From the NCBI GenBank assembly GCA_000708835.1, contig DF237046.1:132079-196078 (forward strand): a stretch of DNA of 64,000 bases, in the 5' to 3' direction. Position 1 is the first letter of the stretch. Each line of letters begins with the position of its first letter. Under the pieces are notes generated by a model. That model was not told the DNA's origin, made no database searches, and worked only from the letters and a program-made list of their open reading frames with translations. Positions 10,829 to 14,323 of this stretch are shown in pieces. The stretch is from Klebsormidium nitens (lineage: Eukaryota; Plantae; Klebsormidiophyceae). The translations under genes were made by a program, and so were the position numbers.

Positions 10829-13420
10829 TCAGTCTTCTAACTTAAGCAACTCGATGTCAAAGAGCAACGTCTTATCAATGAGGCCCTGATTCTTGAGGAC
10901 GAAGTCCAATGCGCGCTGGCCCTGTATTAAGAAAGGGAGCATTGAATCAGCACATTTTAACCTTTAAGTGCATCGAGTGAACGCTAAGTCTGCAATCGCT
11001 CTCATCAGACGAAAGTCGCTGCAGTTGAGAGACGCAAGCCTTTTCTTCCATTTCTCTAAGGACAAGAGAGCAGCCAGATTGTCCGTACTGGTCAGTAGGA
11101 GGCTTTCAAAAGCCACAGCCTCCTCGGTGTTGATCACACCCGCCATGCAAACCCTGGACACAGAACTAGCACGTACCGAGAATGTTTGGGGCTGCGGCCC
11201 AGCCTTGGAGTAGTCGTTGTTCGGGTAGCCAAGCTCGGGGGGCACAATAATCCTGCAAGGCACGCACAACCATCACCCTTATCATGTGAGCATCACCCGA
11301 GCTAGTTAAACGAGCCCATGATCCTCAGGTATTAGCAATAAGCGCGCTCGAGCACTACTACCCCTGCGCCTGGAAGCCGTTCTTTTTGACCAGTGGCTCA
11401 CCTTCGTATTGACCCTACACGCATCCCAGCCACCGCTTCTTCAAAGGCTGGAATGACCTGCACCCAGCAAAGCCAGACCCGTTTTCTGTCGGCCTTGCAC
11501 ATGTTTGTGAAAGGACAGTCCTAACTTCGTGTGTGCTCTTGCAAGACGGCCAAAACGTGGTACAACACAGGGACGGAATACATTCTGCCGAAAACCCTGT
11601 CAGTACGAAACCAGATGATGGGTCCGCCGCAATCGGTCAGCTCACCTTGTTGTCCCCCAAGCGGAACCTGTAGAAATCCTTTTCAGACCCCTGCAGCCAC
11701 AAGCATGTCGGGGGTGAGCGTCCAAACAGCCCAGCCGATATTGCCCTTCGACTTGCCAAATGTGGAGTCCGCCAAGGGCCAGGGCAACGGAAGGCGCGCA
11801 CGTTTGCAACAAGCGTTCCTTGGGATCTATCTAAAAGATGTATCTAATCGTCTACGAATTACACAATCTTCGTAAGTCAGCCTTTGAATCTAGCAACTGA
11901 AGCTATCCAGCACAGGTGCGCTCAAACTCGTTTTGGAACAGGTCGCACGATGCGCCCACCTCGAAAGAGCCTCCCCTCGACTTATTCCGAGCCTCGAAAG
12001 GGCGGCCCAAGTACCCGATAGTGTACCCATCCCAGTCGACCTGAAAGACAGCAAGAAGGGCCTGTCTAGAAGGGCGGCAAGCCACATTTCGAGTGGGTGA
12101 CTTGCCTCGAAAGAGCCACCTTTAGCCTTGTTCCTTGCCTCAAAGATGCGGCCGTAGTAGCCAATGGTGTATCCATCCCAGTCAATCTGCAGACAGTGCA
12201 TCGGGGAAAGGCTTTCCCAGCAACCCAGACGGATGAAAGTACATAATGAAGAGGTGCAGCTATTACTGAGGTGAAAAGGGAAACATGCTGCATCACAGCC
12301 TGGCAACCTGGAGAGTACTTTCGCATTTACATCAGTACTCAATACTCGTGTCCTTAATGGCAGCCAAGCTGCAGCAGGGATGCGTTTGCTCACCACGGCT
12401 ACTTGCCCTTTCTTAGCTTGTGGTCCAAGCCCTGGTTTCAACTCCTGCAGGGGTAGGGAGTCCAAATGTTGCATCAGAGTCCAGCTCAGTCCAGTAAACT
12501 ACATTGAGCCACACAACATGCAGCGGGCATGTTGATAGCTTTCACATAACAACAAACCTGTCTAGAGCTGCATTTGCTTTCCCTTGCTTTCTTCAGATCC
12601 ATACTCAAGCTCCCATGACTGTACTTTGGTACAGGCCGGAAGACTGTGAGCTTGAAGCTGGGGCTTGCACAGAAGTCCACGATGGGCCTCCGTAACGGTT
12701 AGCCGTCATCAATCCTTGACCAAGCGGTGGTTCAAGTAAGTACCATCGAAGGTTGTTGAAGACTGCAGCCCTCAACAGTTGGGGAAGCGGGGCACGTGCT
12801 TACCTTGTACTGCAACCCGGTTTCAGTCAGGATGTAGTCAGGACCGGCCCTCATCGCAGACTTACCGTAGTCTTTGCCTCGAATAGCGGGCACTGCACAC
12901 GCAAAGAGCTATCATCAGATTTTTTTTCTGCAGAAACTTCCGCCATCCTCTCAGCCAAGCCAGTATCCAACCTTAAGAGCATCAAGAAAGATCACAAGTG
13001 CCATGGAGAGCTTGGTACAACGAGGACATATAGTACGGCAGTACAAAGGAGGGCGCCCGTTGTTTACTCACTATCGGTGAATTTCCGGTTTCCTTCAGCA
13101 GCATTTCCTTCAGCAGCATTTGCTCTTCCATAATGAGCTGCAATTGCCGACGCTGCTGCCGCTAGCGCCAGCAACACCTGCCGTCTGCCCTCTGCGTGTG
13201 TAGCAATTGGCAAGGCGCCCTTCGCCGACTCGTCTTGCCTGCTGTCGGCTCTTACTGAGCTCACACCTTTTCTAGAACACTGGCTTCTCAGATGTACATC
13301 TAATGATGGTCCCTTAGATAAACGAGCACATTTCTCAAATCGTTCTGCCGCCGTCCTCAAGCATGATTGCTTTGGAAGCACAAACCTGGGGCCACCCAAC
13401 GTTAGAGCATCCGAAGCCAT
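10829..13420 (-). CDS. FKBP16-3: Thylakoid-lumen FKBP-type peptidyl-prolyl isomerase, FKBP16-3 type, with a duplicated internal exon
   Basis: Transit peptide plus twin-arginine signal (GRRQVLLALAAAASAIAAHYGRANA/AE). Exons: MPAIRGKDYGKSAMRAGPDYILTETGLQYK; ELKPGLGPQAKKGQVAV; [I/V]DWDGYTIGY[Y/L]GR[I/P]FEARNK..GGSFE (two copies); GSEKDFYRFRLGDNK; VIPAFEEAVAGMRVGSIRR; IIVPPELGYPNNDYSKAGPQPQTFS; GQRALDFVLKNQGLIDKTLLFDIELLKLED*. Confidence 0.95.
11960..12040 (-). other. FKBP16-3 alternative exon B (81 nt, VDWDGYTIGYLGRPFEARNKSRGGSFE)
   Basis: Acceptor tgtctttcag|GTC, donor GAG|gtgggc, phase 0/0, no stop codon. Confidence 0.85.
12106..12186 (-). other. FKBP16-3 alternative exon A (81 nt, IDWDGYTIGYYGRIFEARNKAKGGSFE)
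   Basis: Acceptor tgtctgcag|ATT, donor GAG|gcaagt (GC donor), phase 0/0, no stop codon. Confidence 0.85.
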
Positions 13421-13637
13421 TCTGGGTCTGGGCTTGTCAACTCTTGACCAGCGGTCCCCACCTAGTCACGTCCAGAAACTCACGAGAGACCAAGTTCCAT
13501 CTCCAGCTCTCTAGAGTCTAGTAGTAGATGCTGACGAGTGACAAGAGGTTTGCAGACGTGAAAGGACGTAGGTTTGCTAGTCTTACGATATGCGTCATTG
13601 ATGATGTCACACAGGGTTAACCTCCTAACGCACACTA

Positions 13638-13689
13638 AAACCCTAAGGGTAATATTGAGCAGTAGCCCGGTTTTTAACAAACCCTAAGG
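13638..13689. promoter_or_regulatory. Two telo-box-like motifs (aaaccctaagg) in the FKBP16-3/rhomboid divergent promoter
   Basis: Identical 11-mer aaaccctaagg at 13638-13648 and 13679-13689. AAACCCTA is the known plant telo-box; function here is inferred only. Confidence 0.4.
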
Positions 13690-14323
13690 CGTTCCGCCAG
13701 AGCGCACCCTTACCCACCCTAACCCCCCAGCTAACCCCACCAAGATCACAGGTTTGCCCTCATTGTAACCGGAATCTGCCCCGAGCACTTCACCGCACCC
13801 GGTGAAACCTGGCGGTACCAACCATACCGACAAGTACCGTACCCCACCACTGCTATCGCTGATGTCACCGATGACGTAGTTTTGAAGACTAGCAAAGTTA
13901 TGTAGTCTGCTGGGTGAAAGCGTTCTCCAGGTGAATATAAGGGCTCGTGTCGACAGACTTCTTATGAAATCTCAACTGACGGTGATGACCCCGGCACTCC
14001 AAGCTTGGTACAATCTTGATATTAAAGTGAATTAGCGTAGGTAAAGAACGGTACCAGAGGAAGCCCCAATAACCCTCCGTGTTGCGTAATAAGCGTCCAG
14101 AGTGTTGTCCGCTTTGCCCGCGTATTGGAGATATATTCCAAACGCTCTGTTCTGCTGCAGTGAAGTTGCGAAATGTTGATCAACAGTGAAGAGCTGCAGG
14201 AGGAAGACATCATTTGTCATCTAAGCCTAAACCTTTCAAAGCTCCGAGCATCACTTTTATTTGCTGGGACCTAGACGCAGAGCCCAATCCTTCTAGCTGT
14301 TGTTGATCACTGACTTCCTTTCA

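Follow-up and report, generated by a model that had tools for sequence, protein, structure and literature searches.

What does a gene do with two adjacent copies of the same coding exon? The question is raised by a gene on the minus strand of a 64,000-nt stretch of the Klebsormidium nitens genome (contig DF237046.1, positions 132,079 to 196,078; this whole stretch is referred to below as the window, and all positions are counted from its first letter). The gene, an orthologue of plant FKBP19, contains two neighboring exons of 81 nt that are recognizably related to each other, here called exon A (or 4A, at 12106..12186) and exon B (or 4B, at 11960..12040). In principle the pair could be included together, one copy could be a dead remnant, or each copy could replace the other. 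As we describe below, the last of these is very probably the case: The gene carries tandem-duplicated, homologous mutually exclusive exons, and the choice between them gives two in-frame proteins, each 279 aa long.

Assembled transcripts contain exon A or exon B

The RNA evidence comes from four public runs (X1, X3, X6, and X7) belonging to four studies, drawn from the 20 runs in seven studies that contain the stretch. The data take the form of assembled contigs that are 100% identical to the window, and the contig depths are only indicative. The designation of these runs as RNA is itself a guess; the clean removal of introns, with exons 10–50 times deeper than introns, indicates that the contigs are transcripts.

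The constitutive exon 3 (12394..12444, donor GTGAGC) is spliced either to exon A, through a joint at 12394>12186 that is present in X1, X6, and X7, or to exon B, through a joint at 12394>12040 that is present in all four runs. On the downstream side, the likewise constitutive exon 5 (11646..11690) is connected to exon B by a complete joint in X3 (recorded at 11689/11959) and by loose ends of 17 nt in X1, X6, and X7, and to exon A by a 129-nt contig in the same three runs in which exon A is flanked by 17 nt from exon 5 and 30 nt from exon 3. The exon 5 17-mer matches 11673–11689, its single occurrence in the window, and the 129-nt contigs that carry it thus demonstrate that the GC-AG intron leading from exon A to exon 5 is really used. 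The original prediction had proposed mutually exclusive splicing from the letters of the DNA and had named the junctions by which it could be recognized; the four that join exon A and exon B individually to their neighbors are seen in contigs, and neither the joint from A to B (12106>12040) nor one from exon 3 directly to exon 5 occurs among the contigs of the four runs, which contain A or B and never both. The 65-nt spacer between the exon A donor and the exon B acceptor (12041..12105) has no coverage in any of these contigs and no splice joint of its own.

The two forms differ correspondingly in what is excised. Intron 3 (12187..12393; 207 nt), for which contig depth is zero in bins 12216–12316 in all runs, is excised by itself in isoform A; isoform B loses a 353-nt segment comprising this intron, exon A, and the spacer. 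Isoform A in turn loses exon B as part of its GC-AG intron (12105–11691; 415 nt), and in isoform B the intron from exon B to exon 5 measures 269 nt (11691..11959). An mRNA with both exons would encode 306 aa and an mRNA with neither would encode 252 aa, in frame in both cases.

Depths of the two arms fit the same picture. In X1, X6, and X7, the depths for A plus B compared with that of the constitutive part are 71 + 129 versus 219, 73 + 154 versus 190, and 93 + 242 versus 337, such that the summed depth of the two arms approximates the constitutive depth, as predicted by mutually exclusive use. The share of exon A looks to be roughly 28%–35% in these three runs, with B as the major form at about two thirds. 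An exon A contig is absent from X3, where the depth of B (49–52) equals that of the upstream exons (44–59); this may reflect condition-dependent regulation, low abundance, or a gap introduced by assembly or filtering.

The pair is an old duplication

The layout given in the original prediction, two adjacent 81-nt exons of phase 0/0, holds at 12186–12106 and 12040–11960 of the minus strand, and its codon comparison is reproduced in full: The copies are identical at 61/81 nt and 22/27 aa, with synonymous differences alone in nine codons and amino acid replacements in five, and both are free of stops and indels. An independent repeat search of the window likewise recovers the pair (as family D1; 85 nt, 76%, spacing 146), and tblastn finds no third copy of the exon in the window. 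The description of each exon as having its own acceptor and donor requires one amendment. Both acceptors end in AG (CTGCAG for exon A; for exon B, an acceptor with the strong pyrimidine tract TCTTTCAG) and the exon B donor is a GT (GTGGGC), but the donor of exon A is a GC (GCAAGT).

The likeness between the copies stops at the exon borders, with 20/64 and 18/64 positions identical in the intron flanks, which is the level expected by chance. Within the exons, third codon positions hold 13 of the 20 differences, and a Nei–Gojobori (NG86) comparison yields a proportion of synonymous differences (pS) of 0.74, a synonymous divergence (dS) of about 3 (saturated), and a nonsynonymous divergence (dN) of 0.12, for a ratio of about 0.04. 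When 20 random substitutions were placed on exon A in 100,000 simulations, not one outcome had five or fewer amino acid changes without a stop. The arrest of similarity at the borders and the outcome of the simulations together indicate conservation of the coding copies far beyond chance. The original suggestion of an old duplication with purifying selection on both copies is thus supported by the comparison; both have stayed intact while their synonymous sites became saturated.

Possible enforcement of the choice

If A and B exclude each other, how might this be brought about? Because 81 is a multiple of three, neither the reading frame nor transcript decay can police the choice, and nonsense-mediated decay in particular cannot do so. 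We propose that double inclusion would be blocked sterically, with the 65-nt spacer placing the branch site of exon B too near the exon A donor for the spliceosome. Candidate branch adenosines lie 23–27 nt upstream of the exon B acceptor, that is, about 38–42 nt from the exon A donor; the spacer contains no yUnAy consensus, and the branch site of exon B is guessed from the A residues alone. Minimal plant introns are about 70 nt long, a general figure that may not be this organism's; the other introns of this gene span 149–359 nt, and the shortest constitutive one is 149 nt. For exons 2 and 3 of alpha-tropomyosin, the steric limit reportedly exceeds a donor-to-branch distance of about 38–42 nt.

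The ratio of A to B could then be set by the two acceptors competing for the exon 3 donor; exon A would be at a disadvantage because of its GC donor and the hairpin predicted over it, and exon B would be favored by its stronger pyrimidine tract. Exons A and B both have non-consensus donors (GCAAGT and GTGGGC), neither of them U12-type; of the six constitutive donors, all are GTGAG or GTAAG apart from one GTACGT. The predicted hairpin occupies 31 nt (12076..12106, minus strand), with 10 bp formed between GGCAAGUCAC and GUGGCUUGCC around an 11-nt loop, and would bury the exon A donor from position −1 to +9. Its calculated energy is −15.7 kcal/mol (z −3.44), a value matched by 1 of 200 shuffles, and the donors of exons 3, B, and 5 give z values of −1 to +0.3. 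Over longer distances, no complementary pairs stand out, and the 811-nt region folds like its shuffles (z −0.08), leaving a docking-site/selector mechanism without support here.

Weighing alternative explanations

Three other accounts of the same contigs deserve consideration. It is improbable that exon B is the real, constitutive exon and that exon A is an ancestral copy without separate function, spliced as noise or decaying as a relic. Exon B is indeed found in four of four runs with the higher arm depth, X3 lacks a contig for A, and the donor of A is a weak GC lying inside the predicted hairpin; against this, three independent studies put exon A at about 28%–35% of arm depth, and the exon agrees with the family consensus at 26/27 residues and is intact after synonymous saturation, which is not expected of a relic. 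We consider it scarcely credible that transcripts normally carry the two exons together and encode a 306-aa protein in which a strand is repeated, and that the single-exon contigs are artefacts of repeat assembly. Although double inclusion would keep the frame and De Bruijn assemblies can collapse repeats, the joint from A to B is in no contig and the spacer is uncovered, the longest identical run shared by A and B is shorter than the assembler's 31-mer, and contigs with A directly on exon 5 and B directly on exon 3 are impossible from a transcript carrying both. Equally hard to believe is an origin of the two forms from separate loci, separate haplotypes, or an assembly duplication instead of one pre-mRNA, an account in favor of which there is nothing positive, the DNA having been compared at assembly level. 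The copies differ at 20/81 positions and have unrelated flanks, and the exon 3 and exon 5 sequences attached to A are the same as those attached to B, with the splice ends falling precisely on the locus's own AG/GC and AG/GT sites; moreover, no contig fitted two places, and the window contains no other copy.

We therefore retain mutually exclusive use of exons A and B as the preferred explanation, with several considerations that weigh against it. The missing exon A contig in X3 is one. Contigs also drop rare forms, so that low-level double inclusion or double skipping may escape detection, and the pair has been seen in one strain only. The dS estimate is based on about 18 synonymous sites and the age of the duplication is correspondingly imprecise. 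Finally, the steric mechanism and the donor hairpin are predictions, and the hairpin is a lead only, having been noticed post hoc among a few tests.

The gene is an FKBP19 orthologue

The coding span of the gene extends over 10829..13420 of the minus strand, and each mRNA contains eight coding exons, as established from spliced contigs and translation. The reading frame opens with an ATG at 13420 and closes with a TGA at 10831–10829, encoding 279 aa with either exon A or exon B; transcript contigs continue to about 13547 on the upstream side and beyond 10600 on the downstream side of the coding span. Joints in the contigs define seven constitutive introns with GT..AG ends (CT..AC on the plus strand). 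Exon 1 (13072..13420), which includes the start codon and transit peptide, is connected to exon 2 by a joint at 12892/13072 in all four runs. Exon 2 (12804..12892) covers the region of the RGKDYGK motif and is defined, as is exon 7 (11177..11252), by joints and translation. Exon 6 (11402..11457) encodes VIPAFEEA, the counterpart of the FKBP12 pocket helix VIRGWEEG, and the coding part of exon 8 (10829..10921) ends in the stop codon. All of these exons are on the minus strand.

The identity of the gene follows from searches with both the exon and a longer relative. Exon A, extended by three in-frame intron codons, retrieved 192 relatives in a full-library search, and a full-length relative (P0025) retrieved 833 proteins with PF00254 when used as a query. 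Among the P0025 matches listed, every entry that names a paralogue is "FKBP19, chloroplastic" (NCBI), and the remainder have generic names or none. Over 166 aa, the joined gene model shares 72% of its residues with P0025 (E 2e-90), and its identity to land-plant FKBP19 is 65%–74%. Five single exons in a Pfam scan and exon A alone against PDB gave no matches, the pieces being too short. A separate match to the exon A search, P0119 (2290 aa), is a repetitive protein unrelated to FKBP19 and was set aside. The gene is thus the orthologue, in a streptophyte alga, of plant FKBP19, an FKBP-type immunophilin of the thylakoid lumen. The product of exon 1 reads as a bipartite transit peptide, in which a twin-arginine motif (RRQVLL) is accompanied by a hydrophobic stretch and an AxA site, a signal that predicts delivery to the thylakoid lumen of the twin-arginine translocation (Tat) type.

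The original prediction had instead called the gene FKBP16-3. That paralogue is characterized by a conserved CxxxC motif (PMC3634459). In the present protein, cysteines occur only at residues 20, 31, and 48, all within the transit peptide; the mature protein is without cysteine, and hence without CxxxC, and no listed match bears the name FKBP16-3. Since the named relatives are all FKBP19 and the mature protein lacks the motif, we regard the FKBP16-3 label as wrong.

Two further features of the locus may be mentioned here. All four runs include a 326-nt contig (11663–11988) in which the intron from exon B to exon 5 is still present, at a depth of 7–17, equivalent to about 5%–35% of exon B depth, whereas intron 3 and the spacer are without any coverage; this contrast may reflect the order in which the introns are removed. 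Directly upstream of the transcript start near 13530–13547, at 13620–13745 of the minus strand, lies a cluster of motifs resembling plant telomere repeats or telo-boxes (TTAGGGTT, CCTTAGGGTTT, and CCCTTAGGGTTTTAG), presumably situated in the promoter of the gene.

The isoforms differ beside the ligand pocket

What would a cell gain from two versions of this segment? An alignment made with HMMER between the homologue domain and solved FKBPs places the exon from about Val24 of FKBP12 to the 40s loop, with Trp at the position of Tyr26, Phe at that of Phe36, and Glu at that of Asp37. The earlier assignment of the segment to the Tyr26, Phe36, and Asp37 pocket positions and the 40s loop therefore holds. 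Relative to FKBP12, the pocket replacements in the alignment (Y26W, D37E, and W59F) are conservative.

The five residues that differ between A and B sit in the beta2/turn/beta3/40s-loop segment of the FKBP domain. Exon position 11 (Tyr in A, Leu in B) comes second in a two-residue insertion that precedes Gly33; position 14 (Ile in A, Pro in B) immediately precedes Phe36; and positions 21–22 (AK in A, SR in B) fall within a loop about nine residues longer than that of FKBP12. In an AlphaFold model of the homologue (P0025:118–288; mean pLDDT 78), exon positions 1–8 form a confident strand and positions 14–25 have a pLDDT below 50. With the low confidence that these values impose, the model would place four of the five differences past the confident strand, in the turn and in a flexible or poorly determined loop.

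Comparison with relatives indicates which of the two segments is the unusual one. The segment encoded by exon A (GYYGRIF...AKGG) represents the family consensus and matches that of streptophytes at 26/27 positions, and exon B encodes a variant of it (GYLGRPF...SRGG). Of 96 distinct segments from relatives, 93 have Tyr, 1 has Leu, and 2 have Gln at position 11; at position 14, 55 have Pro and 37 have Ile. Exon B thus has Leu in place of a near-invariant Tyr, along with the Pro before the pocket Phe that is common in chlorophyte orthologues; no relative with both Leu-11 and Pro-14 is present among the 96 distinct segments or in the search with exon B. We know of no established function for FKBP19. 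The difference between the isoforms probably lies in how clients or partners are bound at the flexible loop beside the pocket, and not in the fold.

Search for the pair in other organisms

The original prediction had proposed that both exon copies be sought in relatives. Pattern matching with regular expressions and sensitive tblastn found no second exon copy in 83 loci of other organisms, comprising 80 metagenome loci (prasinophyte-like and land-plant-like genes) and three further contigs picked for unusual relatives. All 150 of the 150 listed representatives of the exon A search match with a single stretch, and about 270 relatives show no second exon copy. A search with exon B, taken as the open frame running from the flanking intron through B, returned six land-plant fragments of the A type and none of the B type, within the limits of its word index and length window.

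The A/B pair therefore looks lineage-specific as far as these sequences go. The 81-nt exon itself occurs with identical borders (Q before, V after) in genomic fragments of land plants and must accordingly be ancient. The best identity among the sequences compared is about 74%, and the set holds no close relative of the organism; for this reason, the age of the pair within its lineage has to be read from the saturated synonymous sites alone.

Several loci encountered during this search merit brief description. A 92-kb ENA metagenome contig (L081:4073–4153; P0026) has an exon with the same borders, GYLGRIF...GGPFE, in a single copy within 8 kb, and is the sole other genomic example of Leu at position 11. 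A Logan transcript contig (L083:779–974; P0094) also contains an FKBP19 homologue with Leu at that position (GYLGRIF). Immediately past ...NKAKG the contig changes frame and lacks the GGSFE with which the exon would end; the homologous exon may contain an internal alternative donor, or the contig may be misassembled. On the land-plant-like metagenome contig Ga0099822_1001113, two FKBP19-type exon matches (L062 and L066) lie about 10 kb apart on opposite strands, an arrangement that suggests two gene copies and not a tandem exon.

Relation to known systems and significance

The closest precedent that we found is the cyclophilin gene cyn23 of Volvox carteri, in which exons 4 and 5, of 106 nt each, are mutually exclusive by RT-PCR with a 2.8-fold isoform ratio (PMC4378016). 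With this case already published, the original prediction, which treated such exons as undescribed for plastid immunophilins of algae, is overstated on this point. The resemblance is considerable: Both are genes of a green alga from a peptidyl-prolyl isomerase family in which one of two neighboring exons of the same length substitutes for the other; a few residues close to the ligand-binding site distinguish the isoforms, and the isoform ratio is few-fold. Our gene differs in encoding an FKBP rather than a cyclophilin, and in belonging to a streptophyte rather than a chlorophyte. It differs also in that the 106 nt of the cyn23 exons are not a multiple of three and their double inclusion shifts the frame, whereas 81 nt keep it; decay of faulty transcripts therefore cannot enforce exclusivity here.

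Compared with FKBP19 of Arabidopsis and other land plants, the algal gene has 65%–74% domain identity, the same 81-nt exon borders, a predicted transit peptide of the lumen type, and an exon A nearly identical to their segment, but the relatives compared carry a single exon copy and none has a segment with Leu-11 and Pro-14. For its possible mechanism, the nearest parallel is alpha-tropomyosin, whose exons 2 and 3 are said to be kept apart by steric hindrance, the branch point being too close to the upstream donor. The two share adjacent alternative exons, a short intron, and a branch site about 40 nt from the upstream donor, except that in the present gene the branch site is only guessed from sequence and the spacer contains no yUnAy. 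Mutually exclusive clusters of insects, in turn, use docking-site/selector RNA structures, with competing structures arising from tandem exon duplication (PMC6071210). Those clusters and this gene share an origin in tandem exon duplication and a possible regulatory role for RNA structure; in contrast to them, this gene has only a local hairpin over one donor and no long-range pairing signal.

A more ambitious interpretation would make the choice between A and B a regulated switch, sensed through the donor hairpin (by temperature or a helicase) and retuning the client-binding loop of lumenal FKBP19, as one instance of a genome-wide set of animal-like homologous mutually exclusive exons in Klebsormidium that is enforced by introns too short to splice. 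We put this forward as a tentative and rather doubtful extension of the mutually exclusive splicing described above.

In animals, homologous mutually exclusive exons are one of the main ways of producing protein isoforms with finely tuned differences. In plants and algae they are barely documented, with the Volvox cyclophilin as one verified case (PMC4378016); for Arabidopsis, Kassiopeia lists 99 predicted candidate exons and notes the absence of any described case (PMC3923563). The FKBP19 pair is RNA-supported, with both isoforms abundant and an ancient duplication behind them, in a lineage near the origin of land plants. Gene models that include only one of exons A and B will miss an isoform. 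For FKBP19 itself, the pair amounts to a natural two-allele experiment, in which the isoforms differ at a near-invariant Tyr and in the loop beside the pocket.

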